From: Zygnema circumcarinatum SAG 698-1b
Lineage: Eukaryota > Plantae > Zygnematophyceae
Length of the DNA: 64,000 nucleotides
NCBI GenBank assembly: GCA_037447605.1
Contig: CM074819.1
Span: forward strand, 1,634,297 to 1,698,296
Direction of reading: 5' to 3'
In this document: positions 18,636 through 63,047 of the stretch, piece after piece
Position numbering within the stretch: position 1 is the stretch's first letter
Layout: every line of letters starts with the position of its first letter
Made by a program: the position numbers and the translations under genes
The notes under the pieces: model-generated
Databases searched by the model: none
Seen by the model: the letters and a program-made list of their open reading frames with translations, nothing else
Told to the model about the DNA's origin: nothing

Positions 18636-32593
<13,958 letters not shown>

Positions 32594-35867: not shown

Positions 35868-38800
35868 TTAAGGGGCTGGACGACTAGGAGGAGGTTTACG
35901 CAGAGGGGGACTTCTAGGAGGGGGTCGAGGACTAGGAGGGGGTGGACGTGGAGGGGGGCTACGAGGAGGGGGTCGAGGACTAGGAGGGGGTGGACGCGGA
36001 GGAGGACTTCGAGGAGGAGGTCGAGGACGAGGAGGAGGTGGACGCGGAGGGGGACTCGGAGGGGGACTTCGAGGAGGGGGTCGAGGACTAGGAGGAGGTT
36101 TCTGCGGAGGGGGACTTCGAGGAGGGGGTCGCGGGCTTCGAGGAGGGGGTCGCGGGCTTCGAGGAGGATTACGCTGAGAGGGATTTTGAGGAGTGGGCCG
36201 AGGACTAGGAGGAGGTGGTGAAGGTGGAGGAAAGGGTGGAGGAGAGGGGCTCGGAGGGGGTGGTGAAGGCGGAGGTAGGGGCGGGGGAGAGGGGCTCGGA
36301 GGGGGTGGTGAAGGCGGAGGTAGGGGCGGGGGAGAGGGGCTCGGAGGGGGTGGTGAAGGCGGAGGTAGGGGCGGGGGAGAGGGGCTCGGAGGGGGTGGTG
36401 AAGGCGGAGGAGGAGGTGGAGGAGAAGGGCTCGGCGGTGGTGGTGAAGGGGGAGGAAGGGGCGGAGGAGAGGGGCTCGGAGGGGGTGGTGAAGGCGGAGG
36501 AGGAGGTGGAGGAGAAGGGCTCGGAGGTGGTGGTGAAGGGGGAGGAAGGGGCGGAGAAGGGGGGCTTGGAGGGGGTGAACCTGCAGTAATTCAGGGCATT
36601 TCATGAGTTTCAGTTCAAAGCTAATGGTGGAATCACTTCTTCCATGGCTTACATACTCTTAAAACGTGATATTTCATCAACTATGTGCCTCTCATGCAAT
36701 CTGTCTCCACGGAAAATCAGATTCCTATGTCATTTCTCGGGCTACGCAATTTTTTTTTTGAAAAGCTGCGAGGTCAAACTCGCAGGTTATCTAACTATTG
36801 CAGATGGAGACGACATAGGTTATTGGGATGGGTCGTGAAGATTATCAAAAGCTAAAACATGTTATTGTAGGAGCACCCTCGTTAAATGCTCGTCAAACCC
36901 TGCACCATCTTCTGAATGAGCTTGTTTGAGTTCACAAATTAATACTTGAACTATGCTTCTAGAAGTTCGAAAATTGAATTGGCGCCAACACATGGACATT
37001 CAGTTTGCTCTGTCAGCAATGGTTGGTTGGTTGGTTGACGACAGTGTACAAGCTGTTCAAAATGCGGTACTTCCCACTGCCTATGCCACCCTTTCCTTTG
37101 CCTTTCAAAGGGAATCTGCACGTAATAAGTTACTTACGGCGCAGAATACATTTTTCAGATGACAGCATATATCCTGGGTCACATGTGCAGGTGCCTGTGT
37201 CGAACCCGCACGTGCCAAGTCCCCCGCATGCTCCATCGGAATCATCGCTGTTGCAGAAGGACGAGCACTCTTGCTGAGATCTCTGCGAAGAAGGTGCGCT
37301 ACATTGGAGGGTAATGTCGTTGCGGTAAATGCAGTTGTTGGCATATCGGCAGTATTGATAGTGGGGGCCATAGGGTTGCCCAATCAATGTTATGTTGATT
37401 GGCCCGGAGAAGTAGTTGTCTTGGATATACGCGTCGACAAGGTAATCGCTCGTAAGGGTTATGGAGCCTGTCAGTTTGTTGTTTTCTAAGTTCCTGGTGA
37501 CATGAAGGGTGCACATGAGAGAGGGGGGAGCATTACAGCTGAAACTTTTTAAGTTTCTGTCATGTTTGTGTCACAGCCACTACAAATGTTATGCTTCGAA
37601 ATCACACAAGTGACCTTGGAAACTTTTTTCACAAAACATGAGATAAACAATACTCATGCAAGTGCAGAATCAATGTAATAGCTCGAGAGGTACGAATGCT
37701 TTGTAACCGAACAAAAAATCAAACTGCTGCAACTACAACTTTATCGATGTAACGGCGCTCACAGGTTCGACAGTTGGGTGAGTTTACTGATGAAGCCGGA
37801 CACTCTCCCCTCCAGTTTGTTGTTACACAAGGACCTGCAGACAGAACGACGAAAAACGAAAAACATGAGGCTGATTCTGATCTGAACAGAAGAAAATCGA
37901 AACAAATCAGGCATGCAACTCCACGTTCTGTTGTCCGTGAAAAACTATTTATTTGGATCCGTAGACCTCCAAGAAAACTTGTGCAAAAGCATCAAAAGCG
38001 ATAACTTTACAACTAGACGAATTCTCGAACGCAATTTACACAGACGTCACTAACTTTTAAGCTTGCGAATGTGCAGCCTAGCTAGGACGCGAGCATGCAT
38101 TGGCAGCCCCACTTCTTTAAAGCTTACATTGATATTTTGCACTTCCACTTCCAATAAGGGAAAAAACCACTCACAACTCTGTTAGATTCGAAAGGTTGCC
38201 GATAGAATCCGGGATAGAACCCGATAGGGAATTACCACACAAAAATCTGCAAAGAAAGAAGAGGCTTCAAGAGTCTGGCCGATGTGTACAGCAAAAAGCG
38301 AAACTCATGGGGAACGACAGCTCAAGTGAATGCCAAAGAATTGAGTCGAGCAACTGCAGTACGTCCGTTTGCGTACACGTGACGTGACATCCTGGACTAA
38401 AGCTTTTGCACATGCAGCCAGGGAGGACAACAAGCATGCATTGGCACTTCCCTGAAAGTTGCATTGTTTTTTTGCCATTCCATTGTCACATAAGAAAAAA
38501 ATCAACTCACAGTCCTTTTAGATTCGCAAGGTTGCCGATAGAATCCGGGATAGAGCCCGACAGGGAGTTACTACGCATGCCTCTGCGACAAAGAAAAGAG
38601 GTTTCACGAGTTTGGCCAATGTTTGCAGGTAAAGCGGAGATCATGTGGAAAGAATGCTCAAATGAATGTCAAAGTATGAAGTCGAGCAACTGCAGTACGT
38701 TCGTCCAAGTACACGTGACGTGACATCTTGCACTTTAAGCTTGCGAATGTGCAGCGAGTATGCATTGGCAGCCCCACTAATCTTGCAAACTTGCATTGGT

Positions 38801-41800
38801 TTTTTGGACTTCCAATTCAACTAAGGGAAAAAAATATTTACAAATATTGCAGATTCGCAAGGTTGCCGATAGAATCTGGGATAGAGCCCGATAGGGAGTT
38901 ACTATCGATTTCTCTGAAAAAAAAAAAAAGAGGCTTCACGAGTCTGGCCGGTGTTTGCAGCAAAAAGTGGAGGTGGGAAGATTGATCAAGTTAGAGCAAC
39001 TACAGTACGTCTGTCCGCGCACACGTGACGTGACATGCTACATTGGCAGCTCCACTCTTAAAAAATTGCGTTAATTTTCAGCACTTCCATTTCAGATAAG
39101 AGCAAAAATACTTACAAGTATTTCAGATATGCAAGGTTGCCAATAGAATCCGGGATAGAACCCGATAGGGAATTAATGATTAACCCTCTACAAAGAAAGA
39201 AGAAAGTGGCTTCACGATTTTGGCCGAGGATTACAAAAAAAAGCGGAACTCATGTGGAAAAAATTGCTCAAATGAATGCCGAGAGACGGAATCGAGCAAC
39301 TGCAGTACCTCCGTCAATGCAAACGTGACGTGACATCCTAAATTTTAAGAGTTGCAATAGAGCTAGGACAAGCGCATACGCTGGCAACCCCAGTTCATGA
39401 AAGCCGCATTGATTTTCTACATTTCCAATTCTAATGAGGAAAAAACTACTTACAAATCTTGCAGATTCACAAGGTTGCCGATAGAATCCGGGATAGAGCC
39501 CGTTAGGGAATTATAACTCAAGCTTCTGCAAAGATAGAAGAGGCGTGGCGAGTCTGGCCAATGTTTACATCAAAAAGCGAAACTCATGTTGAACGACAGC
39601 TCAAGTGAATGCCAAAGATTTGAGTCGAGCAAAGCTTAAAGCTTGTGATCGTGCAGGCAGGGAGGGCAACAAGTATGCATTGGCCTGAAAGTTGCATTGA
39701 TTTTTTGCAATTCCACGTCAAATAAGGGGAATAGATACTTACAAGCGTGTTAAATTAAAAAGAAAAAAGGGGCTTTAAAAAACTGGCCGATACTTGCAGC
39801 AAACAAGCGGAACTCATATGGAAAGAATACTCAATTGTACACGTGACGTGACATGCAGCCCCAGTTCTCTGAAGGTTAAAATGGCTTTCTACATTTCCAT
39901 TTTCCAAATAAGGAACAAAACACGTACAATGTTTGCAGATTCGCAAGGTTGCCGATAGTAACCGGGATAGGACCCGATAGGGAGTTATGACCCAAATCTC
40001 TGCAAGAAAAAAAGGGGCTTAACAAGTTTGACCGATGTTTGCAGCAAACAATGAAGCGTGTGCATGTGCAACAGTCCCAGCTAGGACGAGATAATGCATT
40101 GGCAGCCACACTTCTCCGAAAGCTGCAATAATTTTCTACAATTCTATTATAAATAAGGGAAAAAACACTTACATATCTTGCAGATTCGCAAGGTTGCCGA
40201 TAGAATCCGGGATGGAGCCAGATAGGGAATTAGACCACAGGCCTCTGACAAAACAACAAAAAAAAAAGGGCTTCACGAGTCTGGCCGATGCGTACTTAAA
40301 AACTGGAACTCATGTGGAAATAATGCTCAAGTGAATGCCAAGGAATCGAGTCGAGCAATTGCAGTACGTGACGTGACATCTTGCACTTTAAGCTTGCGAA
40401 TGTGCAGCCTAGCTAGGACGCGAGCATGCATTGGCAGCCCCACTTCTTTCTAAGCTTATATTGATATTTTGCACTTCCAATTCAAATAAGGGGAAAAAAA
40501 TACTTACAAGTGTGTTAGATTCGAAAGGTTGCCGATAGAATCCGGGATAGAACCCGACAGGGAATTACGACTCAACTCACTGCAAAGAACGAAGAGGCTT
40601 CACGAGTCTGGCCGATGTTTGCAGCAAAAATCGGAACTTATGTGGAACGAATGATCAAGTGAATGCCAAAGAATTGAATCGAGCAATTGCAGTACTTCCG
40701 TCTGCGTACACGTGACGTGACATGCTGAAGCGTGTGCATGTGCAACCCAGCTAGGACGCGAGAATGCATCGGCAGCCACACTTCTCTGAAAGCTACAATG
40801 GTTTTCTACAATTCAATTTCAAATAAGGGAAAAATAAATTACAAAAATTGAAGATTCGCAAGGTTGCCGATAGAATCCGGGATGGGGCCGGATAGGGAAT
40901 TCGACCACAAGTCTCTGACAAACATAGAAATCAAAAGGGCTTCACAAGTTTGGCCGATGTTTGCAGCAAAAATCATCACTCATAAGGAACGACAGCTCAA
41001 GTGAATGACAAGGAACAACGCCGAGCAACTGCAGGTCGTCCATCCGTGTACACGTGACGTGACATCCTGAACTTTAAGCGTGTGTTCATGTGCAGCCAAG
41101 CCAGGACAAGGGCATCAATTGGTGGCCCCACCCCTTAAGCTGCAGTGATTTATTAGACTACTATTTCGTAAGAGAAGGAGGTACATACACGTATTTCAGA
41201 TTCACAAGGTTGCCGATAGTATCCGGGATAGAGCCCGATAGGGAATTACTACCCATTGCTCTGCAGAAAAGAAAGAAAGCTTCACGAGTCAAGCCGATGT
41301 TTAAAGCAAAAAACGACACTCCTGTACAAAAAAGATCAAGTGAATGCCGACAAACGGATGCGCGCATGCATTGACAACCCTACTTCTTTGAAAGTTGCAT
41401 TGGTTCTCTGCACTTTCATTTTAAAAAAGGGAGGAAATACTCACGTGTTTCGCAGATTGGCAAGGTTGCCGATAGAATTCGGGATAGGGCCGGATAAGGA
41501 ATTAGAATGCAAATATCTGCAAGAAGTAAAAGGAGGGATGGCGAGTTTGGCTGATGTTTACAACAAAAAGCGAAACTCTTGTGGAAAGGAAGCTCTAGAG
41601 AATGACGAGGAAGGGAGTCGAGCAACTGCTGTAATTCCGTCCGTGTGTACACGTGACGTGACAACCTAAACTTTAAGCGGGTGCCTGTATAGCCGAGCTA
41701 GAACGCGAGCATGCATTGGCAGCCCCTCTTCTCTGAAAGCTGCAATGGTTTCTGCACTTGCAATTCAAAAGAGGGAAAAGAGTAGTCACAAGTATTGCAG

Positions 41801-43861
41801 ATTCACAAGGTTGCCGATGGAATCCGGGATAGAACCTGTAAGGGAATTCGAATACAAGTTTCTGCAAAAAAAAGAAAAGGCTTCACGAGTGGGGCCTATC
41901 TTTTACAACAAAAAAGCGAAACTCTTGTGGAAAGAAAGCTTTAGTGAATGACGAGGAAGGGAGTCGAGCAGCTGCAATGCATCCGTCCGTGTGTACACGT
42001 GACGTGACATCTTGAACTTTTGCATGTACAGCCTAGCTAGAACGCGAGCATGCATTGGCAGCCCCACTTCTTTGAAAGTTGCAATGATTTCTGCACTTCC
42101 AATTCAAAAGAGGGAAAAGAGTAGTTACAAGGATTGCAGATTCACAAGGTTGCCGATGGAATCCGGGATAGAACCTGTAAGAGAATTAAGTATGAATGAC
42201 CTGCAAAAAAGAAAGAGGCTCCTCAAGTAAGGCCGATGTTTGCAGTAAAAACTGGATCTCATGTGGAAAGAATGCTCAAGTGAATGACGAGGAACTGAGT
42301 CGAGCAATTGCAGTACGTCCGTCCATATACACGTGACGTGACAACCTGAACTTTAAGCGGGTGCCTGTATAGCCGAGCTAGGACGCGAGCATGCATTGGT
42401 AGCCACACTTCTTGAAAAGCTGCTGTTTCCTGCACTTGCATTTCAAACAAGAAAATAAAACACTTACAATTCTTGCAGATTCACAAGGTTGCCGATAGAA
42501 TCCGGGATAGAGCCCGTTAGGAAGATAGCACTCATGTCTCTGCGACAAAAAAAAGAGGTTTCACGAGTTTGGCCAATGTTCGCAGGTAAAGCGGAAATCA
42601 TGTGAAAAAAATGCTCAAATGAATGTCAACGAATGAAGTCGAGCAACTACAGTAAGCACTCGTGATTTCTGCAAGCTGCATTGATTTTTGCATTTCTATT
42701 TCAAACAAGAGAGATGAGTTACTTGCACTTTTATTTCTTTGTCAAGCATTCCTATTCCTTGTATTTCAGATTTGAGGCATAAATACTGAGAAGATCTGCA
42801 CATTCGCTAGGTTGCCTATTGAAATCGGGATAAAAACCCTTAAATAACTTGATTCCAACTCTGTGCAATAAAAAAGGACAACAGTATGCGTAAGCAAGCT
42901 CACTTTCTTTGAAAGCTCCAGTGGTTCAGTGCTTTTACTAATTTAGTACGTCGTCAACATCTGAGCTCTCTCTCTCTCTCTCTCTCTCTAGCTCTCTTAA
43001 CTATGAACTCGCACACACGCATGTAACACATCCATATGGAATGGAGTCACTCACAAAGTTGTCAACTTTGTCAGGTTCCCGATGGCAGGTGAAATGGTTC
43101 CTCCATATCTCCTGAAATTACAATACCTGCAAATGGCGGGTTACCAGTGAAAGCGTCAGAAAAACAGGGCTCCAGCAAACGAGGGAGGCTCTTCCTGATC
43201 AGGTTGTCTGAACCAAGAGGCCCCCTTTAGCCCCCTTTTTCAGAAGGATTCTTCCCTCCTAGCAGCCTCGGTAACAGTTCAGCAGCTATGGAATCCGTGG
43301 ATCACTCCAAAATTACAAGCGGTGTTCAGTCAAAGTGTAGCTCACAGCTGCGTGACGCGACCGTTTCCGTCGCATGTGATCCCCGCCCAGGAGCTGCAGT
43401 CGCTGCTACTCGCCGTCCAGGAGGTGAGTCGTGACCCGTCGGAGAGTGCCGCCTTGACAGTGAGAAGAGCATCCCCTGCGGCCCAAACGCGAGAAGATGC
43501 AGGAATGAGGCCTACATTAGCTTCAAATTTCACAGAGAGAAGGGAAAGTAAGATTTCCCTCTCCCCACACATGGAGGCTTATCGCCGCAGATTATACAGA
43601 TCTTTCCTGGTTATGTTAGACGCAAGGGTGGGCGAGCGGCTCAACGACCGGCCCTGCCGGGAAGCGTCTGCAGAGGGAGGGAGGGCAAGCCTCACTGTCT
43701 CGCGGGTCGATGTTGACCGCGGAGGCGATGGCAAGGAGCAGCAAGAGGAGGATGAGAGTGAAAGGGAGGTGGGGAGAGGGAGGGCGCGAGGAAGAGGAAG
43801 AGGGATATGGAGGAGAGGGAGAGCGAGAGCGAGAGGGAGAGGGAGAGCGCCAGGCCGCCAT
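35868..43861 (-). CDS. Gene B: secreted LRR-extensin-like paralog of the N-terminal half of gene A (SP-LRRNT-16 single-LRR exons-Cys/EGF-extensin, ~840 aa)
   Basis: Exons 43696-43861 (signal), 43346-43475 (LRRNT, near-identical to A), 72-nt LRR exons at 43055, 42468, 42129, 41790, 41445, 41189, 40843, 40508, 40173, 39928, 39454, 39116, 38842, 38511, 38175, 37763; 37138-37493 (356 nt, as in A); Pro-rich exon from 36580 to TAA at 35868-35870. Confidence 0.85.
38040..42870 (-). repeat. LRR exon-intron cassette array of gene B (14 intact + 2 dead units, period mostly 331-346 bp)
   Basis: The core aaggttgccgatagaatccgggatag recurs with homologous flanking introns. Exon spacings are 339, 339, 345, 256, 346, 335, 335, 245, 474, 338, 274, 331, 336. 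Confidence 0.95.
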
Positions 43862-44963
43862 GGCGGCGCAAAGGGTGAGGGCGACGAGTGGCGTCGTCAA
43901 GGGGCGCCGCGGCGACTAAAGCTCCGCCGCCGCGGCTGCCGGGGAGGCGGACGGCCACGTGGCGCGTTTCCATTTGCTGAAGTTTTTCTTCCGCAATTTT
44001 CAAGCATTTCAAGACAAAAAAATATCGTAAGATTTTTTTCGTACACGATACTAGAATGAAGTATCGTGTTCGTACGCATAGCCGACAACCGACATATATG
44101 TACGGTACGAATAATAATTTATGCTTCTCTAACCGACCATTTCGTACGGTCCCGCCACTCGACGACAGGCTCGCAGCCGCGCTGCGGGGAGTGCCTCACT
44201 GATGTCGTTGGTGCCGTCCAATTTCTCCGTACGGTCACGGGCACTAGAGGACAGCCACGTGGCAGTGGCAGTTGCCCGTAACCAAGACGTCCATTCACCG
44301 CATACGGACAGAATTACGGCGACGGAAGGACACACGTAACAGCGCGTGAGCACAACTAGTGGAGCCACGTGGTGCCCTACCACCGGCGGAATGCAGCGAT
44401 TTGCGACAAAGCATGCGTGACGCGGCGGTGCGCGATTCGCTGTCTAAACCCCGACACGTGACAGAGGCCTCCGTATGGATAGGACAGCGTACGGACAATG
44501 TGGGAGCCATACGGACAGTTCTCATCAGTCCGTTAATTCGCTGCTTGCCACGTGGTAGTCACGCGGATTTGGGGCGTGAAGGTAGTGGATTGCGTGCCTG
44601 ACCTCCACGTGTCTATTTTTTATGGCGAGCAGAAAAGGATTCACTGTCAGCGAATGGAATAACGCCACGTGGAACACGGTCAAGATGTGATGACCACGTG
44701 GCGACGACGACGCGGCGCGGCGAAAGCCGTTTCCATGTGACCGTTTGACGGTGCCGCCGTTCACGGCGTACGAACTGCGGCCGACTTGGAGCAGAGAGCG
44801 AGAGAGCGCTGCGGACAGTGCGCACTGCGATTTGCAAACTTTGGCCCAACCGTTGGCAGTGCCTCGCAACCGTTGGCAACACGAATCGCCAATGGTTGGT
44901 TCCTCCCCCCCCCCTTATGTCAGCGTTGCACAGGTCGGACCATTCGATCGAACATTTGCAATA

Positions 44964-45417
44964 GGGGGAGTCAGACCTTGACCATCGCTCGCGGAATTGA
45001 AAGATTCCGCCGGCGGAAAGGTATTGATTTCGATTGCAGAATTCGGGTCGGAAACCGCGGCTCCCCCCGAACCTGTCTGTCCCGTCCGTACTTCGAAATA
45101 GGTTACGAAAATGAGATACAGGCTCGGCGCCCGAGCCTGTCGAACGTCCACTTTTGGCGGAAAAGGCCTGCCGTACAACGCGGAATTGGCCCGACGGGCT
45201 CGCGGAATTGGTTTGGCGATGGACAAGGTCTGACTCCCCCTAATCCCCTCCCCCTCCCCCCGTATCTCATTTTTGTGACCTATTTCGAAGTACGGACGGG
45301 ACAGACAGGTTCGGGGGGAGCCGCGGTTTCCGACCCGAATTCTGCAATCGAAATCAATACCTTTCCGCCGGCGGAATCTTTCAATTCCGCGGGCGATGGT
45401 CAAGGTCTGACTCCCCC
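44964..45417. mobile_element. MITE family 1 (TIR GGGGGAGTCAGACCTTGACCA): full copy plus inverted partial copy
   Basis: Full copy 44964-45240, partial opposite-orientation copy ~45262-45417, TA flanks. Confidence 0.85.
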
Positions 45418-45625
45418 TAATGGTTGTGAACCATTGGATCGCGATCCAGGCAACAATTGTAATGGTCGCAATCCATGGGATGTCAATGGTTGTAAGCCAT
45501 TGGATGGCGATGGTTGCGAGCCATTGGATGGCAATGGTTGCTAACCATTGCAATGGTTGCGAACCATTGAACCGTCCAACCATTGCCATGCCATGGTTGG
45601 CCAATGGTTGCCGATGCAATGGTCC
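45418..45625. repeat. CAATGGTTG/CCATTGGA minisatellite
   Basis: Degenerate ~20-27 bp units. Similar units at ~35430-35480, ~28045-28085 and ~16540-16640. Confidence 0.65.
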
Positions 45626-46022
45626 GACCTGTGCATCGTTCCTCTCTTCACTTTTGCGCCTTGAGCCCATGCAGGACACGTGTCAGTGCTTGGCGGAATC
45701 ATGCTATTTGGGACATTTCGGGCCGTTGGATTAACCTCCCAGTAGTAGGTCGCGAAAACAAATTAAGATAGTTGCTCAAGGTTCTGGAATGAATCTTCAC
45801 CGATAGGCCGTCACGTAGCACTACATTTCCAAGTATTGGGGAGCCGATAAGGATAAGGACGATGGAAAGAAATAGATAAAAAATAGACTTAGATTGGAGT
45901 TTCAAATTCATCCCTCAATGAAGGACACTAACAACTGCAAGTTTAATTTTCCAATGACAGTTTAATAAATTACGTCAAAATTAGTTTTTTTTACCGAAAT
46001 TTCATTGAGATTTCTGTAGCAT

Positions 46023-51992: not shown

Positions 51993-53267
51993 TAATACTT
52001 TAAATACTTTTTTAAGGGAATTCCCTTATTTGTAGAGGCCTTCATCGGGCGTAACAGCTTCGGCAAGGGTTCGACGAAGGTTCAGCGAAGGTTCGGCTGC
52101 CGCCGAAAGCGACAGCTACCGAACGGCGATGCGGGAGACGACCGCGGCCGCTAACGACAAACGTACCGAGCTCGCCGCAGGAGGCGGCCATGGCGGCCGG
52201 CTCGTTCCCTCCCTCCACCGTGCGGGCACGGCGGGTTGGCCACTCTCTCTCTCTTTTTTTCTCTATCTCTCTCTCTCTCCCTCTCACTTGTTTCCTCTCA
52301 CTCTAACCCATTCTCCCTCTCAGCCCTTCCCTCGATCTCTTTCGTCCCTGACGTCTCTTGTTGTCCTTCTCACTCACTGTGTCTCTCTCGTTCTCTGCCC
52401 GTGTCTCTCTCTCTCTGCCCTTCCCCCCCTCCTCATCCCTCTCGCTGCCCTCCTTTCTCTCTCGTTGCTATTTTTTTCTCTATCTCTCTCTCTTTCTCCC
52501 TATCTAGTTGCGGGGAAGGTGAGGCACAAAGAAGGAGAGACGGAGTCGCGAGGACGAGAGAAAGAGAGGGAGAGGTGGGGAGCGAGCGAGTCTTTATCAG
52601 TCTCTTGCAGTCGTCGGACGGTGCCGCCGAACCTTCTCGATGGGTGGGCCAAGGAGGGGTCGGGAAGGAACGCGCAGGCAGGCGGGCAGCCGCACACCGA
52701 GCGATGGCCCGCGGGGTGGGGATGGAGGGAGGAGAGAGGGGGAAGGGGGAGNNNNNNNNNNGGGAGGGGGAGGGAAGGGGAAATAAAAAATCTGAAATTC
52801 GAGTGTGTGTGTTTTCGTTATTCAACCTTGAAACGCGATCGATCGGTGGCTGACAACAGCTTTTATAAATCCGAGGGCCCAAAAGCAACAATGTATCCGC
52901 CTCTGGGGAGAGAGGAGAGGAAGGGAAACGGGAGAGAGGGAGAGAGGCCCCGGCCCCTTCTCCGTCCTTTCGGGTCGGTTGGTCGGTCGGCAAGTGTCGG
53001 CAGCCCTCCCTATTGGTCAACCGGCGGCGCCGCCCGCCAGCTGGCGGGCCGCCACTGGCGGAACTAGCCGATGTTTTTTTTTCACTTCCTGCGCGTCACG
53101 TGGCGCGCATCCATTGGCCCGTTTGCAGCTGCAAATTTTTTCTTTCCCGAGCCGCGTTTCGTCCGCCCATGGCTCTTACCGGCCGTCCGTGGGTCCGCTC
53201 GGAGCGGGTACTCCTCGATTTTCCATGTTTATCTAGACCGAGTACTCCTCCGCGCGCGATCGTAATA

Positions 53268-53646
53268 GGGGGGGTTAGACCTTGACCATCGCCAAACCAA
53301 TTTCGTAAGCCCGTCGGGCCTATTCCGCCGTGTACGGCAGGCCTTTTTCGCAAAAAGTGGCCGTTCGGCAGGTTCGGGCGCCGCGAATTCAAGAAAATAA
53401 TTATTTTACCTTCGTATCTCCGAGCCAGGTCTGACCCCCCCCTTTTCGCCCCGCCGCGCTCCCTCCGCCGCCCGCCGCCTGCCGCCCNNNNNNNNNNATT
53501 TTTGTAACCTATTCCATAGTACGGACGGGACATGACAGGTTCGGGGGAGCCGCGGCTTCCGAACCGAAACCTGGAAACGAAATCAATACCTTTCCGTATA
53601 GGGAATCTTTGAATTTCGTAAGCGATGGTCAAGGTCTGACCCCCCC
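53268..53646. mobile_element. Diverged MITE family 1 copy (spans an N gap)
   Basis: gggggggttagaccttgaccatcg ... cgatggtcaaggtctgaccccccc, TA flanks. Confidence 0.75.
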
Positions 53647-54438
53647 TATTAGGGTACGAGTACGTATTTTGTTGCTTACGGGATTCCGCAGTTTTACTGA
53701 GAGTCGTGTAGTCTGACAGTTCAAGATAACTAGAACAACGGGTTCCGTGTTTTGTACTGTGGCTTTTTCACCTGTAGGTGTGTTCTTACTCATCCGTATA
53801 TATATAAATAGGTACGGGCACACCCCTCCCCGTCATTTTCTCCCGAAAAGTCGGCTCATCGGTCGGACCAGCCCATCCGTACACTTTCTGTACGGTTTCA
53901 CCGGCCGCCGGCCGTTGCCAGCCCGTTTGGGTCCTGAACTCCTGCCGGCGGCGAGGCGCCAGTCGCTGTATGGCCGGCAGCGGTCAGCCGGTCAGTCGGT
54001 GAGTCGGTGCCGGCCGTCGGGTGGTCGGCCGGCAGAGGTGGACCCGTCAACTTGCAGCGGTTGGCGGCCGGCTTTCAACTGACAAGAGAAATCGGCGACA
54101 TGTGATTGGTCGGTGGTCTGGAATGTGCGCTTATCGCATTATATGTGACAAAGTGAAATTTTTCCTAAAGTCACAAATTTGGAGCTTCGAGATACTACGG
54201 GGAAGGTCCGCTTGATAAAGTGAATACAATGTCTCTTTGCTTCGCTGCACGCCGAAGGATGGTGGAAGCAAGGCACCGCTGCAAAGCGACGGAAATGCGC
54301 TGTCGATAAAAAAGTTGCAAGGATCGCTGGGGAAGGGCTTTCGGGGCCGTGCGCGTATCTCAAAGGAGCGGTGGGCGCACTGGCGAAGGAAGACATCCAA
54401 CCGAGCATCGAGACAGCCAAAATTTTCGACAGCCAATA

Positions 54439-54715
54439 GGGGGAGTCAGACCTTGACCAGCGCCAAATCAATTCCGCGAGCCCGTCGGGCCAATTCCGCG
54501 TTGTACGGCAGGCCTTTTCCGCCAAAAGTGGACGTTCGACAGGCTCGGGCGCCGAGCCTGTATCTCATTTTTGTAACCTATTTCGAAGTACGGACGGGAC
54601 AGACAGGTTCGGGGGGAGCCGCGGTTTCCGACTCGAATTCTGCAATCGAAATCAATACCTTTCCGCCGGCGGAAACTTTCAATTCCGCGGGCGATGGTCA
54701 AGGTCTGACTCCCCC
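54439..54715. mobile_element. MITE family 1, 277 bp
   Basis: TIR GGGGGAGTCAGACCTTGACCA at both ends, TA flanks. Confidence 0.9.
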
Positions 54716-55929
54716 TAATGGAATAAACTCATCGGCAGAGTCGCTGACAACATCCCCGAAAATACGCCGAGAACCGTCGAAAACAAAATAAAGCAACGAT
54801 AGTATATTGTATCTACTGTACATTTTTAGTCTTTATCGAGGCTGGCCATTACGCTTCGTTGACTTTATCGAGGTGTGCTCGGCTTGACTTAAGCAGCTTT
54901 GAGCCGCTGGGATCGTCCCTCTCAGGTACTGCAATTATTGGTCGCAAAATATTGACTTTTAGTCGAATAATTGGTTCTTTCTCTGAGTTTTTGACTGTTT
55001 TCCTTCCAGAATTAAACCCTAAAAACACAAACTTGCAAATTAGGAGCCTCTTAGGAAGGTTTAATGAAAACTGAAAACGTACATTTGGCAAACACCACTG
55101 ACTTAGTAAGATCTTGCTACTAGGGTTTTTTTTGCGTGTGGTCGATTGAGTTCCCCATAACCTTTCAATTCCTGTTCTGAAAACAACAAAAACCAAAACA
55201 ACAACAAAAAAAAAAAAAAACAAAAAAACAGCAAAAAACAAGAACAACAACAGCATTACACGCAAAATCTCGCATGTGAGAAAAAAAAGTATCATCGAAA
55301 ACAAGCGTTCCTCTCCCATTCTCTCCCCCACCGCTTTACCCCAACGCACGAAAATATGTGCCCTGCCAACCAACCTATATAAAAAAAAACAATGACCGGC
55401 ACCAATCAGATCCCTCCCTCCACCTCCCCAGCCTCCGGGACAAATTAAAAAAAGAAAAAAAAAAGAAAGAAACTAAGAATAATTCCTAATACCAAGCCTC
55501 GCGGGCCGTAGTAGACCTCCCCTTAGTCACTACTCAGTGCAAATTGGCACTTTTTGCCAACCTCCCCTCCTCCCTCCAAACCCTAAAACAGAGAGGCCCA
55601 TCCTCCTCTTCTCTCCACCTCAAACGCTGCCCCTGCAAGTCACTTAGCTCACATCACATGAGCCTCTGCTCTTCCCCCCCTTACCCTCCCTCTCACCCTC
55701 TCACCCTCTCGCTCTCTCTCCCTCTGCTTCCCCCCCACTCTCTCACCTCATCCTTCTCCCTCGCCTCTGCATACCCTTCTCAATCATTTCTCCTCCCAAG
55801 TCACAAGTACTGCACATAGTACCTCCCCCCCCCCCCTCTCCCTCCCTCCCACAATCCCTCCCTCCCTCCCTCCCTCCCCCCCTCCCTCCCTCTTCCCCTC
55901 TCCCTCACCTCTCCTACCCCACTCTCAGC

Positions 55930-58577: not shown

Positions 58578-60265
58578 GAGGGGGTGGGGAGAGGGACAGG
58601 GAGAGGAGGGCTGGCTTACTTGCTCTTGAATCTCAACGGAAACTGCCAACAAATCCAGAGGCAGTCCATCCAACGCTCTGCTCAGTTCCGCAGTCAACTC
58701 CGCAAACCGCCTTCCCATCGCCTCTCTCTCCATCACCTGTTTTACATTCAATAACAAAGAATCTAAGTCAACACCAGACCTTCATCTTTAAAAACATATT
58801 CCACCCGACCAGACATGCTTCTCAATCCCTAAGACATCATCCCAAAGTCATACATGATCATATCTAGCCCAACCAACCAGCATCATCCCCCAATTCTGCA
58901 TCACTTCTGCCTCCCTCACATCACTTTCAGTACCTCATCAACCTGCCCACCCTTCCACATAGTGCGAATTGTACATCATCTTGGTCCCACCCTACATCAT
59001 CCTAGATACCCATAACATCACCCTGCCCATCTCCCTGCCAACTCTAACATCCTTCCTCTGCACTACCACACGACCTTTGCTAACCCTACATAATCCTTCC
59101 TAACACCACATCACCATGACCTACCGTACATCCCACTGCACCTTGCCCTACATCATCCTGAGACAAATCCTACAGCTTCCTGCCAACCTCACAACACCAA
59201 CTCAACCCCTACATCACCTTCGTCAAATCCTACAATTTCCTATCAATTTCTGAACAGACTAACACTCTCTGTTTCCCAATTCACTCCTTCCCCCAACCCT
59301 CCAACTTCCTCACCTCTCACACATCCCCAACTCCCTTCCTCCCATTTCCCCCCCACCCTGCATCTCCCTGTCAATCTCTACATCACCCTTCTTACATCAC
59401 CCTAATCTACCCCTACCTCTACCCTACAAGCCCCAGTCCCATCATCCTCCCCGTTCCTTACCAACCTAACCTCCCGGACCCCACTTTTCCATCCCCTCTT
59501 CTCCCTATGTCACCCGTACCAACTCCACCTCTCACTTACCCTTCCCATCTCCTCACTATCTGAAGGACTCTAAATCTCCCTCTCACTCCCTAGTCGGCCT
59601 CCCACCCCCATAAAATATCCCCCCCCCCCTCCGCCGCCACCCCCCCGCCCCCAACCAAACTAACCCAACTCCACATGTTACGCTGCCTTGACCAATCCCC
59701 TCCTCACCCTCTCTGCAGCCCTAATCGGGGCAAAAAGAAACTCCACACTCCCTACCCTCCCCCAACCCCCCGTGCATCTTCAAACCCTAATTCACACTCT
59801 CTACCAACCCTCCCCCTTCTCCTCCACTCCCCTCCCCCTCCCCTCTCTCCCTCTCCCTTTCCCTCCTCCCTTACCTCTCCTTTNNNNNNNNNNCCTCCCC
59901 CTCCCTCTTCCCCTCCCCCTTCCCCGCCCCCCCCCCAAAACCCTAATTTCCCCCCTTCCCCCCCTCCCCCCCCTCACCATGTAAAGGCGCGAGGACGTCT
60001 TGCAGTCCTCGAGCACTTGGCGGCTCGCGCGGAAGGCCGCGCGCAGGTCCTGAAAGCGCACGAGCGCGGCCGGCGGGAGGGGGCTCTTCACTTCGCGGAT
60101 CTCCTCGAAGAGCGGCGAGAGGAGCTTCACGAGCCGCGTGAGGTTCCAGCAGCTCTTCTTGTGGCTCTTCACCTCCTCGCCCGCCGCGGCTATGGCTGCC
60201 ACAAGCTTCAGGAGCTCGTCCACCAGAGCCATGGAGGACGACGTGGCCATCTTGTGCGGCGACAT
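55930..60265 (-). CDS. Plant U-box/ARM E3 ubiquitin ligase, PUB13/PUB14-like (UND + U-box + ARM repeats)
   Basis: Exons ~59979-60265 (KKSCWNLTRLVKLLSPLFEEIRE..SSRLYM), ~58620-58736, ~57840-58301 (PPDDFKCPISLELMRDPVIVSTGQ), ~55930-57020 (WLKEGHKTCPKTQQ..LIPNYSLRSLIQQWCEANG; ARM: TQEHAVTALLNLSI, ARENAAATLFSLS, RGKKDAATALFNL). The junction near 57000-57020 is defective as assembled. Confidence 0.92.
57040..57330. repeat. Compound microsatellite (GA)n-(TA)n-(GCAG)n in a PUB intron
   Basis: Directly visible. Confidence 0.95.
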
Positions 60266-63047
60266 CTCCCCCCCCTCTCTCTCTCTCCCCTTCCCTCCCC
60301 CCTCTCTCTCGTTCTATCTCTTTCTATCTCTCTCTCTCTGTAACTCTATGTATCTCTATATCTCTCGCTGTCCCGGTCTCGGCCCCTGCTTCTCGCCCTC
60401 TCCCTTCCTCTCCCCTTCCTCCCTCTCTCCCTCCCTCCCTCCCCCTCTGTCCCTACCAGGGAAAGACTGCCGTGGGGGGACACGTGTCGGCCCGAGGAGG
60501 CGCCAGGAGGCGAGAGCCGTCCGGGCGGGCCAAACGCCCGGATAGGTTCGGCTGAGCAGGCGGTTAAACTCCGCCGTCCGATGCGTGATCGGACGGCCCA
60601 GATTAGCCCGGTCAGCGGGCGGCGGAAGGACCGTACCGTTGGCGGGAAAGACGGTAACGGATTGCGGCTTTCCTCCGGGGACGCTCCGACGGACGGTGTG
60701 GACGCGGCGGCGGACGGTTGACTTAGCGCCGGCGGACGGTACGTGGTGGTCGGTGGACGGTACGGGCGCCGGTAAAGGAAGTCTCTGTCCTGGCGCCGGC
60801 CAGAGGACATTAGGTGGCATTAAATGCGGGGGGCCGACGGGCGGCAGAGGGACAGGTGGGGGGCGGAGGGCACGCCACGTCAGCATTGGGCGGTCTAACG
60901 GGCCGTTTCTATGTGAAAAATTGGGGTATTTTTGGAGGCCTTGATTGGACGGTTGGGGAAATTCAGGAGCAATTATTTGAGGATTTTTTGCAGGGGGAAA
61001 ATCAGACAGACTTTTGGGTGAAGTTTGGCAGGATCCTAAACGACAGCGCGGAGAGAGAGGAGGTTGAAAGTGACGTCATAACCGGAAAAGTACTGGAAAC
61101 TGCGACAGCCTGTCGGTTAGCTACCGAAGGTCACCGCCGTTACGGTCAGTCAACTCTGAAACAGTTCCCGTCCGTCGTGGTCGGCGCTTTTCAGAAGTGA
61201 CGCGTCCAATCACCTTGTTTTATGGCACGTGCACAAACTTTCGGACCAGTTAAATGGTGTCACGTGGTTGTCAGAAATGGACAAGCAAATCTATCAACTG
61301 GAAATTTGAACGGCGGCGGCGGTCGTTCTGAAATGGACGGATTCGAGAGCCATACGGAATAATACGTCATCATTGGCTGAGGTCAGCGCGTCTCTGACGT
61401 CTTCATTTGACCAGGTCGAAGTCCGCAGCGGTTAAGGGCGCATGAGACTTCGTTGACTTCTCGGANNNNNNNNNNCCTCCCCCTCCCTCTTCCCCTCCCC
61501 CTTCCCCGCCCCCCCCCCAAAACCCTAATTTCCCCCCTTCCCCCCCTCCCCCCCCTCACCATGTAAAGGCGCGAGGACGTCTTGCAGTCCTCGAGCACTT
61601 GGCGGCTCGCGCGGAAGGCCGCGCGCAGGTCCTGAAAGCGCACGAGCGCGGCCGGCGGGAGGGGGCTCTTCACTTCGCGGATCTCCTCGAAGAGCGGCGA
61701 GAGGAGCTTCACGAGCCGCGTGAGGTTCCAGCAGCTCTTCTTGTGGCTCTTCACCTCCTCGCCCGCCGCGGCTATGGCTGCCACAAGCTTCAGGAGCTCG
61801 TCCACCAGAGCCATGGAGGACGACGTGGCCATCTTGTGCGGCGACATCTCCCCCCCCTCTCTCTCTCTCCCCTTCCCTCCCCCCTCTCTCTCGTTCTATC
61901 TCTTTCTATCTCTCTCTCTCTGTAACTCTATGTATCTCTATATCTCTCGCTGTCCCGGTCTCGGCCCCTGCTTCTCGCCCTCTCCCTTCCTCTCCCCTTC
62001 CTCCCTCTCTCCCTCCCTCCCTCCCCCTCTGTCCCTACCAGGGAAAGACTGCCGTGGGGGGACACGTGTCGGCCCGAGGAGGCGCCAGGAGGCGAGAGCC
62101 GTCCGGGCGGGCCAAACGCCCGGATAGGTTCGGCTGAGCAGGCGGTTAAACTCCGCCGTCCGATGCGTGATCGGACGGCCCAGATTAGCCCGGTCAGCGG
62201 GCGGCGGAAGGACCGTACCGTTGGCGGGAAAGACGGTAACGGATTGCGGCTTTCCTCCGGGGACGCTCCGACGGACGGTGTGGACGCGGCGGCGGACGGT
62301 TGACTTAGCGCCGGCGGACGGTACGTGGTGGTCGGTGGACGGTACGGGCGCCGGTAAAGGAAGTCTCTGTCCTGGCGCCGGCCAGAGGACATTAGGTGGC
62401 ATTAAATGCGGGGGGCCGACGGGCGGCAGAGGGACAGGTGGGGGGCGGAGGGCACGCCACGTCAGCATTGGGCGGTCTAACGGGCCGTTTCTATGTGAAA
62501 AATTGGGGTATTTTTGGAGGCCTTGATTGGACGGTTGGGGAAATTCAGGAGCAATTATTTGAGGATTTTTTGCAGGGGGAAAATCAGACAGACTTTTGGG
62601 TGAAGTTTGGCAGGATCCTAAACGACAGCGCGGAGAGAGAGGAGGTTGAAAGTGACGTCATAACCGGAAAAGTACTGGAAACTGCGACAGCCTGTCGGTT
62701 AGCTACCGAAGGTCACCGCCGTTACGGTCAGTCAACTCTGAAACAGTTCCCGTCCGTCGTGGTCGGCGCTTTTCAGAAGTGACGCGTCCAATCACCTTGT
62801 TTTATGGCACGTGCACAAACTTTCGGACCAGTTAAATGGTGTCACGTGGTTGTCAGAAATGGACAAGCAAATCTATCAACTGGAAATTTGAACGGCGGCG
62901 GCGGTCGTTCTGAAATGGACGGATTCGAGAGCCATACGGAATAATACGTCATCATTGGCTGAGGTCAGCGCGTCTCTGACGTCTTCATTTGACCAGGTCG
63001 AAGTCCGCAGCGGTTAAGGGCGCATGAGACTTCGTTGACTTCTCGGA
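59894..63047. repeat. 1582-bp-offset direct duplication (59894-61465 = 61476-63047) including PUB exon 1; probable assembly artefact
   Basis: Identical ORF translations at an offset of 1582. Both copies begin immediately after an N gap. Confidence 0.85.

Follow-up and report, generated by a model that had tools for sequence, protein, structure and literature searches.

Hypervariable, solvent-exposed residues of the xxLxLxx motif are a textbook feature of plant LRR defence proteins. LRX proteins are built from a signal peptide, an N-cap, LRRs, a Cys-rich region, and a Ser-Pro4 tail; in land plants their LRR domain is conserved and binds RALF peptides. The ROCO and LRR-kinase arrays of brown algae (Ectocarpus, Saccharina) encode one LRR per 72-nt phase-2 exon, include inactivated exons, vary in repeat number between recent paralogs, and show positive selection at four concave-face sites (PMC3341825, PMC11378527). 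The LRR genes of Tetrahymena consist of tandem units of a 90-bp exon plus an intron, with phase-2 introns, and are ascribed to unequal crossing-over; these arrays number thousands of genes and are linked to REP retrotransposons (PMC6564038).

How does gene B, an LRR gene in the window (the whole 64,000-nt stretch of Zygnema circumcarinatum SAG 698-1b DNA that we analyzed), compare with these systems? The features of gene B and of its paralog A are as follows.

43861-35868, minus strand: gene B, whole
43696-43861, minus strand: exon 1, with the start codon and a predicted hydrophobic, signal-peptide-like stretch; its 3' end and donor match those of gene A exon 1
43345-43475, minus strand: LRR N-cap exon, phase 1 to 2, 96% identity to A
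43055-43126, minus strand: first LRR exon, single-copy, 72 nt
42791-42862, minus strand: B0, a dead LRR-like cassette without acceptor AG or donor GT
42468-42539, minus strand: cassette B1
42129-42200, minus strand: cassette B2, present in a contig of run X7
41790-41861, minus strand: cassette B3
41445-41516, minus strand: cassette B4, joined to B5 by splicing (X7 record 19)
41189-41260, minus strand: cassette B5, joined by splicing to B4 and B6 (X7 record 19)
40843-40914, minus strand: cassette B6, joined to B5 in a spliced contig
40508-40579, minus strand: cassette B7
40173-40244, minus strand: cassette B8
39928-39999, minus strand: cassette B9
39743-39754, minus strand: Bd, remnant of a deleted cassette, with 12 exon bases and the donor but no acceptor, within the 402-nt intron B9-B10
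39454-39525, minus strand: cassette B10, a plant-type LRR with FLS2 and GSO1 as best matches
39116-39187, minus strand: cassette B11, joined to B12 by splicing (X8 record 23)
38842-38913, minus strand: cassette B12 (X8 record 23)
38511-38582, minus strand: cassette B13
38175-38246, minus strand: cassette B14
37763-37834, minus strand: single-copy LRR exon past the array
37138-37493, minus strand: last LRR and Cys-rich EGF-like exon, expressed and joined to the extensin exon
35868-36580, minus strand: terminal exon, extensin-like, Ser-Pro4 and Pro-Arg-rich, carrying the stop
29534-30738, minus strand: paralog A array of five 72-nt cassettes (30667-30738, 30347-30418, 30097-30168, 29883-29954, 29534-29605)
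26473-32593, minus strand: paralog A frame, with signal peptide, N-cap, LRR1 (31455-31526), array, LRR (29165-29236), LRR/EGF (28179-28534), and extensin-like exon

The gene B array (42539-38175, minus strand) comprises 14 exons, each exactly 72 nt, bounded by AG and GT, phase 2/2, and stop-free; exon inspection shows one LRR per 72-nt phase-2 exon in both gene B and paralog A. The two genes differ in cassette number (14 in B vs. 5 in A), although their flanking introns are just ~15% apart. Gene B introns span 173 to 402 nt, introns of separate units can be aligned to one another, and nucleotide identity among the 19 cassettes (14 B and 5 A) is 65 to 89%. Two inactivated units, B0 and Bd, lie within the array. 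All 14 exon starts listed in the original prediction match the exons found here exactly, as do the exon ends, except that their last letter is set by the first base of the next exon (Phe at B6-B7, Ile at B8-B9). The statement that no two cassettes are alike extends to all 19, among which neither a peptide nor a 4-residue head is held in common.

What protein would such a gene encode? The gene B model has an LRX-type layout of signal peptide, LRR domain, Cys-rich region, and Ser-Pro4 tail, and no transmembrane segment was seen in it. Homology searches were run exon by exon: a single cassette matched FLS2, GSO1, and PGIP2, among others, and its match to LRX2 reflected generic LRR only. The EGF-like exon gave a weak EGF match, under the Pfam cut-off, and its relatives are LRR-EGF kinases of Mesotaenium and LRR-EGF-proline-rich or LRR-EGF-papain-LysM proteins; a word-indexed search returned no homologs of this exon, and the exact core pattern had no match in metagenome contigs. 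For a U-box/ARM gene, also in the window, Logan contigs gave an 89% match and land plants one of ~65%. A ROC-COR GTPase domain is absent from gene B, whose C-terminal exons encode the EGF-like and extensin parts, with the stop. Read from the gene model, the product is likely, as part of the overall explanation given below, to be a secreted protein of ~17 LRRs, an EGF-like module, and an extensin-like tail, which is probably tethered to the cell wall.

Has selection driven the cassettes apart? Because the repeats are young, their introns provide an internal neutral clock, and selection on single ligand-facing residues becomes measurable within one gene. With the introns as neutral yardstick (they evolve at nearly equal rates from site to site, gamma shape 8-9), we applied codon models equivalent to the PAML and MEME tests and a PHI-like test, all written for this analysis. 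Amino-acid entropy across the 19 cassettes is 3.2 bits at x8, 3.5 at x10, 2.3 at x11, 1.6 at x5, and 3.1 at x6, with 0 to 0.8 at most core sites. Likewise, dN is 1.15 at the five x codons and 1.69 at the head codons, vs. intron divergence of 0.30-0.32. The site-wise comparison of M7 with M8 gave 2dL = 105 (p ~ 1e-23), that of M8a with M8 gave 2dL = 102, and omega_s was 9.0. Across models omega at the x codons is ~4-9, a size that is imprecise because the trees are star-like and mosaic: It is 6.9-7.6 when compared with neutral (p < 1e-34), 3.6-3.9 with the local synonymous rate free (p ~ 0.001 vs. pure hypermutation), and 4.3-5.1 when multi-hit changes are allowed (p <= 0.001). Posterior values of 1.0 were reached at codons 1, 3, 4, and 23 and at no others. 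Even in the seven youngest cassette pairs, with upstream introns 9-15% different, head x bases differ at 39 of 63 positions.

Repeated change by positive selection at four sites, x6, x8, x10, and x11, is strongly supported, and the strong diversifying selection anticipated in the original prediction is borne out, with dN/dS above 1 and x codons more divergent than introns. The variability was described as confined to the x positions of xxLxLxx, which is where most of it lies; x5, however, does not significantly exceed neutral (omega ~2), L9 and x2 are about neutral (omega ~1.4), and some junctions give T, V, I, or F at the split L7 codon. The core shows ordinary purifying selection (dN 0.07). 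Its supposed near-invariance at synonymous sites does not hold, and we reject the idea that these sites are frozen or homogenised: Core dS is 0.36 vs. 0.30-0.32 for introns, and the ML synonymous rate is 1.0-1.4x that of introns.

Could the variable codons be old rather than fast-evolving? Gene conversion might have evened cores and introns but spared the strand, thereby inflating omega, and the flanks are in fact mosaic. The PHI-like test gave p = 0.04, and the upstream- and downstream-flank trees of the cassettes conflict. Cassettes A2 and A3 have 11 of 12 head bases in common, though their upstream introns are 29% divergent, which suggests short conversion tracts behind the likeness of their heads. 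Old codons, however, predict synonymous saturation, whereas the synonymous rate at L9 is 1.4x that of introns and the data reject a 5-fold rate (p = 0.02); omega exceeds 1 with the synonymous rate free; the single-copy LRR exons of A and B show this bias too (x bases differ at 15/30, other bases at 8/108, p = 6e-7); and the sparing of the strand would need selection anyway. We therefore consider great age of these codons very unlikely. A separate proposal, in which most crossovers lie within exon cores and whole strands move as blocks, found no support (Mantel 0.16 within the intron and 0.19 across the exon, neither significant).

The original prediction had also raised targeted diversification. 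A targeted mutator or programmed DNA rearrangement (DGR-, AID-, or VLR-like) at the x codons would fit the sharp concentration of variation beside both splice sites and the slight enrichment of multi-nucleotide changes, which give a better fit (p ~ 0.01). Selection nevertheless fits better than pure local hypermutation, and no significant rise in synonymous rate was found, the x-codon rate being nominally 1.8x that of introns (p = 0.22). The 95 x codons contain no stops (6.9 expected, P = 0.0008) and no prolines (3.8 expected, P = 0.02), and the single-copy exons, again, have a like pattern. Moreover, germ-line gene B is complete and spliceable, with its own introns, rather than filled from donor cassettes, and the opposite strand holds no intact inverted or spare cassettes (best antisense local score 30, vs. 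54 for B0, the decayed copy in sense orientation). In DNA run X6, from another study, 0 of 123 x bases were changed and cassette order was the same wherever contigs span units, in contigs that lose rare variants. Nothing observed points to dedicated machinery for generating diversity; targeted mutation or rearrangement is disfavored and appears extremely improbable. Micro-conversion may contribute to the pattern, since the x codons have a nominally raised synonymous rate and multi-nucleotide changes fit better.

Is the array spliced as a whole or in combinations? In spliced contigs, B4-B5-B6 and B11-B12 are connected exactly at their exon ends, with 0 mismatches and in genomic order, and one contig runs unbroken across B4-B5-B6; gene B contigs also show the EGF exon spliced to the extensin exon. 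These contiguous joins imply that splicing is not mutually exclusive, and a Dscam-type cluster with one exon per transcript is thus out. Combinatorial exon skipping would instead leave out varying sets of cassettes, each new junction making a new beta-strand and the whole a transcript-level repertoire. The geometry allows this, as predicted: All exons are phase 2/2, 120/120 forward pairings are in frame and stop-free (87/120 keep Leu at L7), and the dead units B0 and Bd are necessarily skipped. Splice variants also occur in brown algal LRR arrays and are reported for some Ectocarpus ROCO genes (PMC3341825, PMC11378527). However, all three gene B cassette junctions seen, out of 13 and in contigs that lose rare isoforms, connect consecutive neighbors. 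The 15 best-supported other joints (44 weaker ones lie beyond these) lack intron-type ends, mostly include foreign letters, and have depths of 80-800, whereas gene B lies at 10-30; some of them turn up again in as many as three runs. On these grounds we read them as paralog transcripts, not skips. Nor was conserved intron-exon pairing found in the 173- to 402-nt introns: Just three of them contain a 17-nt stretch that complements the 3' end of the exon, this stretch is not conserved, and 1 of 14 units beats shuffles, which rejects docking-site or selector pairing. A recurring intron motif was rejected as a required splice signal, being absent from several introns, one of which, B4-B5, is itself spliced. 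Combinatorial skipping is thus unlikely. It is similarly doubtful that the array is alternatively spliced at a low or inducible level, in addition to germ-line selection, to yield many wall-bound LRR binders from one locus; if it were, this would be a splice-generated recognition repertoire, with a new concave strand per skip junction, in an alga near land plants.

The best overall explanation, which we consider likely, is intragenic tandem duplication with mosaic recombination and diversifying selection in a probably wall-bound LRR-EGF-extensin protein. Homology among the units shows that the LRR domain grew by germ-line tandem duplication of a ~335-bp exon-plus-intron unit, with later loss of units (B0, Bd), and the mosaic flanks suggest mixing by unequal crossing-over or conversion. 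To judge from the three junctions, splicing would mostly follow the genomic order of the exons and yield a single long solenoid. As the statistics above show, positive selection has repeatedly fixed mutations, which would be ordinary point and small multi-base ones, at codons x6, x8, x10, and x11 of the solvent-exposed concave face, and purifying selection has retained the scaffold. An arms race with parasite enzymes or surface proteins, like that of PGIP or Cf-type LRR proteins, is the most likely driver, with mating recognition as the main alternative. The locus offers an unusually clean natural experiment in receptor evolution, points to a strong arms race over recognition at this streptophyte alga's cell wall, and marks residues worth testing once the ligand is known.

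Brown algae, ciliates, and plant LRR proteins already provide examples of the mechanism; in our incomplete coverage of the literature we found no published description of such arrays in zygnematophytes. Gene B resembles the brown algal ROCO type in its 72-nt phase-2 LRR exons, change of repeat number between paralogs, dead exons, and four selected sites. It differs in its streptophyte host, its secreted LRR-EGF-extensin product without ROC-COR, its plant-specific GxIP repeat, its introns, which are still alignable between units, and its splicing, in which no alternative forms were seen; Ectocarpus loci, moreover, carry intact, inverted exons on the non-coding strand, whereas gene B has none. 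With Tetrahymena it shares tandem exon-plus-intron units and phase-2 introns, but with 72-nt rather than 90-nt exons, and a search, not in depth, identified no REP-like retrotransposon at the array. LRX proteins have a conserved LRR domain, whereas gene B has a fast-evolving array of variable length and an EGF-like module; the likeness seen is one of domain layout. PGIP, Cf-type RLPs, and R genes share with gene B the plant-type 24-residue LRR and selection at xxLxLxx; there, however, alleles or paralogs are compared, whereas gene B offers young repeats inside one gene, one exon each.

The array region is a tandem repeat with a period of about 335-339 bp, each unit of which comprises one 72-nt minus-strand exon (a cassette) between AG and GT, in phase 2/2 (one split-codon base at its start and two at its end). 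One cassette matches plant-type 24-residue LRRs (FLS2, GSO1, PGIP2), with the consensus LxxLxxLxLxxNxLSGxIPxxLGx.

42539-38175, minus strand: array of 14 intact exons (B1-B14) in gene B, an LRR-EGF-extensin gene
30738-29534, minus strand: array of five exons (A1-A5) in the related gene, paralog A
18636-26306, minus strand: second N-cap, five divergent LRR exons, EGF exon, papain-family protease, EGF and LysM-like exons

Gene B opens with a signal-peptide-like exon, an LRR N-cap, one single-copy LRR, and a dead cassette (B0) with both splice sites gone; after B1-B14 come another single-copy LRR, an exon that combines an LRR with a Cys-rich EGF-like part, and a Ser-Pro-rich terminal exon with the stop at 35868. 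The 402-nt intron that separates B9 from B10 contains a second dead unit, missing nearly its whole exon. In searches run exon by exon, the EGF exon has relatives in Mesotaenium LRR-EGF kinases and in LRR-EGF-proline-rich and LRR-EGF-papain-LysM proteins, as expected for a streptophyte alga, probably a zygnematophyte. Exon codons 22, 23, split, 1, 2, 3, and 4 correspond to x5, x6, L7, x8, L9, x10, and x11 of the strand xxLxLxx, whose x residues, as is established for repeats of this kind, point to the concave, ligand-side face. Because the codon split across exons is L7, the intron interrupts the beta-strand there, as originally predicted. Elsewhere in the window, a U-box/ARM gene (PUB13/14-like) has roughly 1.6 kb around its 5' end in two copies (about 59800-60890 and 61380-62470). 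These are 1582 bases apart, share their ORFs, and have N gaps close by; they may be an assembly duplication. A family of repeats that contain inverted copies within them recurs at several places (44786-45679, about 53100-54790) and is possibly a non-autonomous transposon.

Does the variability among cassettes exceed neutral expectation? All 19 peptides are distinct, bearing out the claim that no two are alike, and variability is highest at x8, x10, x6, and x11. Pairwise divergence is 0.30-0.32 in introns and 0.36 at core synonymous sites—two independent yardsticks of the neutral rate, in agreement—vs. 0.07 at core nonsynonymous sites and 1.15 at x-codon nonsynonymous sites. Synonymous sites of the core are therefore not frozen, contrary to the original prediction. 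The seven youngest pairs (upstream introns 9-15% apart) differ at 39 of 63 head x bases.

Codon models, fitted on trees scaled chiefly by intron sites, gave the five x codons an omega of 6.9-7.6 (P < 1e-34), or 4.3-5.1 with multi-nucleotide changes allowed. Site models without prior labels agreed (M7 vs. M8, 2dL = 105; M8a vs. M8, 2dL = 102), and the predicted diversifying selection is thus upheld. Its confinement to x positions holds in part: the posterior is 1.0 at codons 1, 3, 4, and 23 and 0 at all others, and x5 showed no positive selection in these models. L9 and x2 evolve near neutrally. Could a local mutator, as in the proposed targeted diversification, have varied the strand codons instead? 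The synonymous rate at x codons is raised 1.8-fold, not significantly (P = 0.22); with it left free, omega is still 3.6-3.9, and this fit beats pure local hypermutation (P ~ 0.001). At L9, flanked by selected codons, the synonymous rate is just 1.4 times the intron rate and a 5-fold rate is rejected (P = 0.02), which argues against a mutator and equally against the idea that conversion spared an old strand. No stops (6.9 expected) and no prolines (3.8 expected) occur among the 95 x codons, although part of this absence may reflect the loss of dead units. Between A and B, the single-copy LRR exons differ at 15 of 30 x bases vs. 8 of 108 others (P = 6e-7). The same bias outside the arrays means that the pressure targets the protein face, not cassettes as such.

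Unit trees are star-like. Well-supported upstream-flank pairs (B1-B13, B3-B4, B10-B14) conflict with the downstream-flank groupings (B1-B2-B3, B7-B14); the downstream tree is the one that the core favors (P = 0.003 in the AU test). AU tests that set a flank against the tree best for that flank are biased and given no weight. A PHI-like recombination test gave P = 0.04. The constant introns have diverged by about 15% between A and B and the cassette introns by about 25%, with no one-to-one cassette orthologs evident. These patterns indicate units born, lost, and mixed. A2 and A3 (30097-30168, 30347-30418) have 11 of 12 head bases in common with upstream introns 29% different, possibly a short conversion tract copying a binding strand. 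In X6, a DNA run from another study, cassette order is unchanged wherever contigs span units, with 4 differences in 3342 bases of the listed pieces and 0 in 123 x-codon bases; this excludes wholesale diversification between isolates but could not detect a 5-fold rate.

Are the cassettes spliced together? The stretch is present in six DNA-like runs, and several unlabelled runs contain up to 15% of its words (exons alone would give 16.7%). Among contigs of runs X7, X8, X11, and X6 aligned to 37130-42900, those of X7 and X8 behave as RNA: B4-B5-B6 are joined at exact exon ends with 0 mismatches (X7, record 19), B11 is spliced to B12 (X8, record 23), and the EGF exon is spliced to the extensin exon (X7). 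The cassette joints therefore exclude mutually exclusive splicing. The 15 best-supported other joints (depth 80-800) lack intron-type ends, several recur across runs, and most have foreign letters between cores; they probably represent fixed transcripts of paralogs that lie elsewhere and are more strongly expressed. Low-level cassette skipping may still occur, as 44 weaker joints lie beyond the 15 examined and contigs lose rare forms. The paralogous-array transcripts have nearly identical cores and depth far above gene B's; judging by the spacing at one joint, a paralog may have a repeat of 23 residues. Intron sequence in X7/X8 at depth about 10 (37517-37701, 37869-38138, 40420-40537, 41958-42139) may be pre-mRNA, intron retention, or DNA carry-over. 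Only three introns (38059-38076, 38737-38754, 40390-40407) contain a 17-nt stretch that is nearly the reverse complement of the exon's 3' core. Its match to the exon of the same unit reaches significance in one case, and the resemblance is probably chance.

Overall, the signal is real and strong, and the mechanism is ordinary. Most probably, unequal crossing-over lengthened the LRR solenoid by adding exon-intron units, all cassettes would be spliced constitutively into a secreted, probably wall-tethered protein, and positive selection against a shifting ligand would have resurfaced it. That ligand is probably parasite-derived; mating recognition is the alternative driver. Paralog A seems to continue in frame, by a predicted join, into LRR, papain-like protease, EGF, and LysM-like exons: the 18636-26306 exons follow its extensin exon, which ends at 26473 and could splice to them in frame (phase 1). 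One exon has a Pfam C1 protease match with an apparently intact catalytic Cys motif, and an LRR-EGF-papain-EGF-LysM transcript is found in another organism (P0122). A and these exons may be either one gene or two; if joined, the run into protease and LysM-like exons would fit defence against chitin-walled parasites.

Brown algal ROCO genes likewise carry one LRR per 72-nt phase-2 exon, contain inactivated exons, and show selection at four sites of the concave face (PMC3341825, PMC11378527). Tetrahymena has arrays of 90-bp exons ascribed to unequal crossing-over (PMC6564038). Although it works as the brown algal and Tetrahymena arrays do, the gene B locus belongs to none of the ROCO genes, Dscam-type clusters, or VLRs. 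Its architecture is LRX-like.
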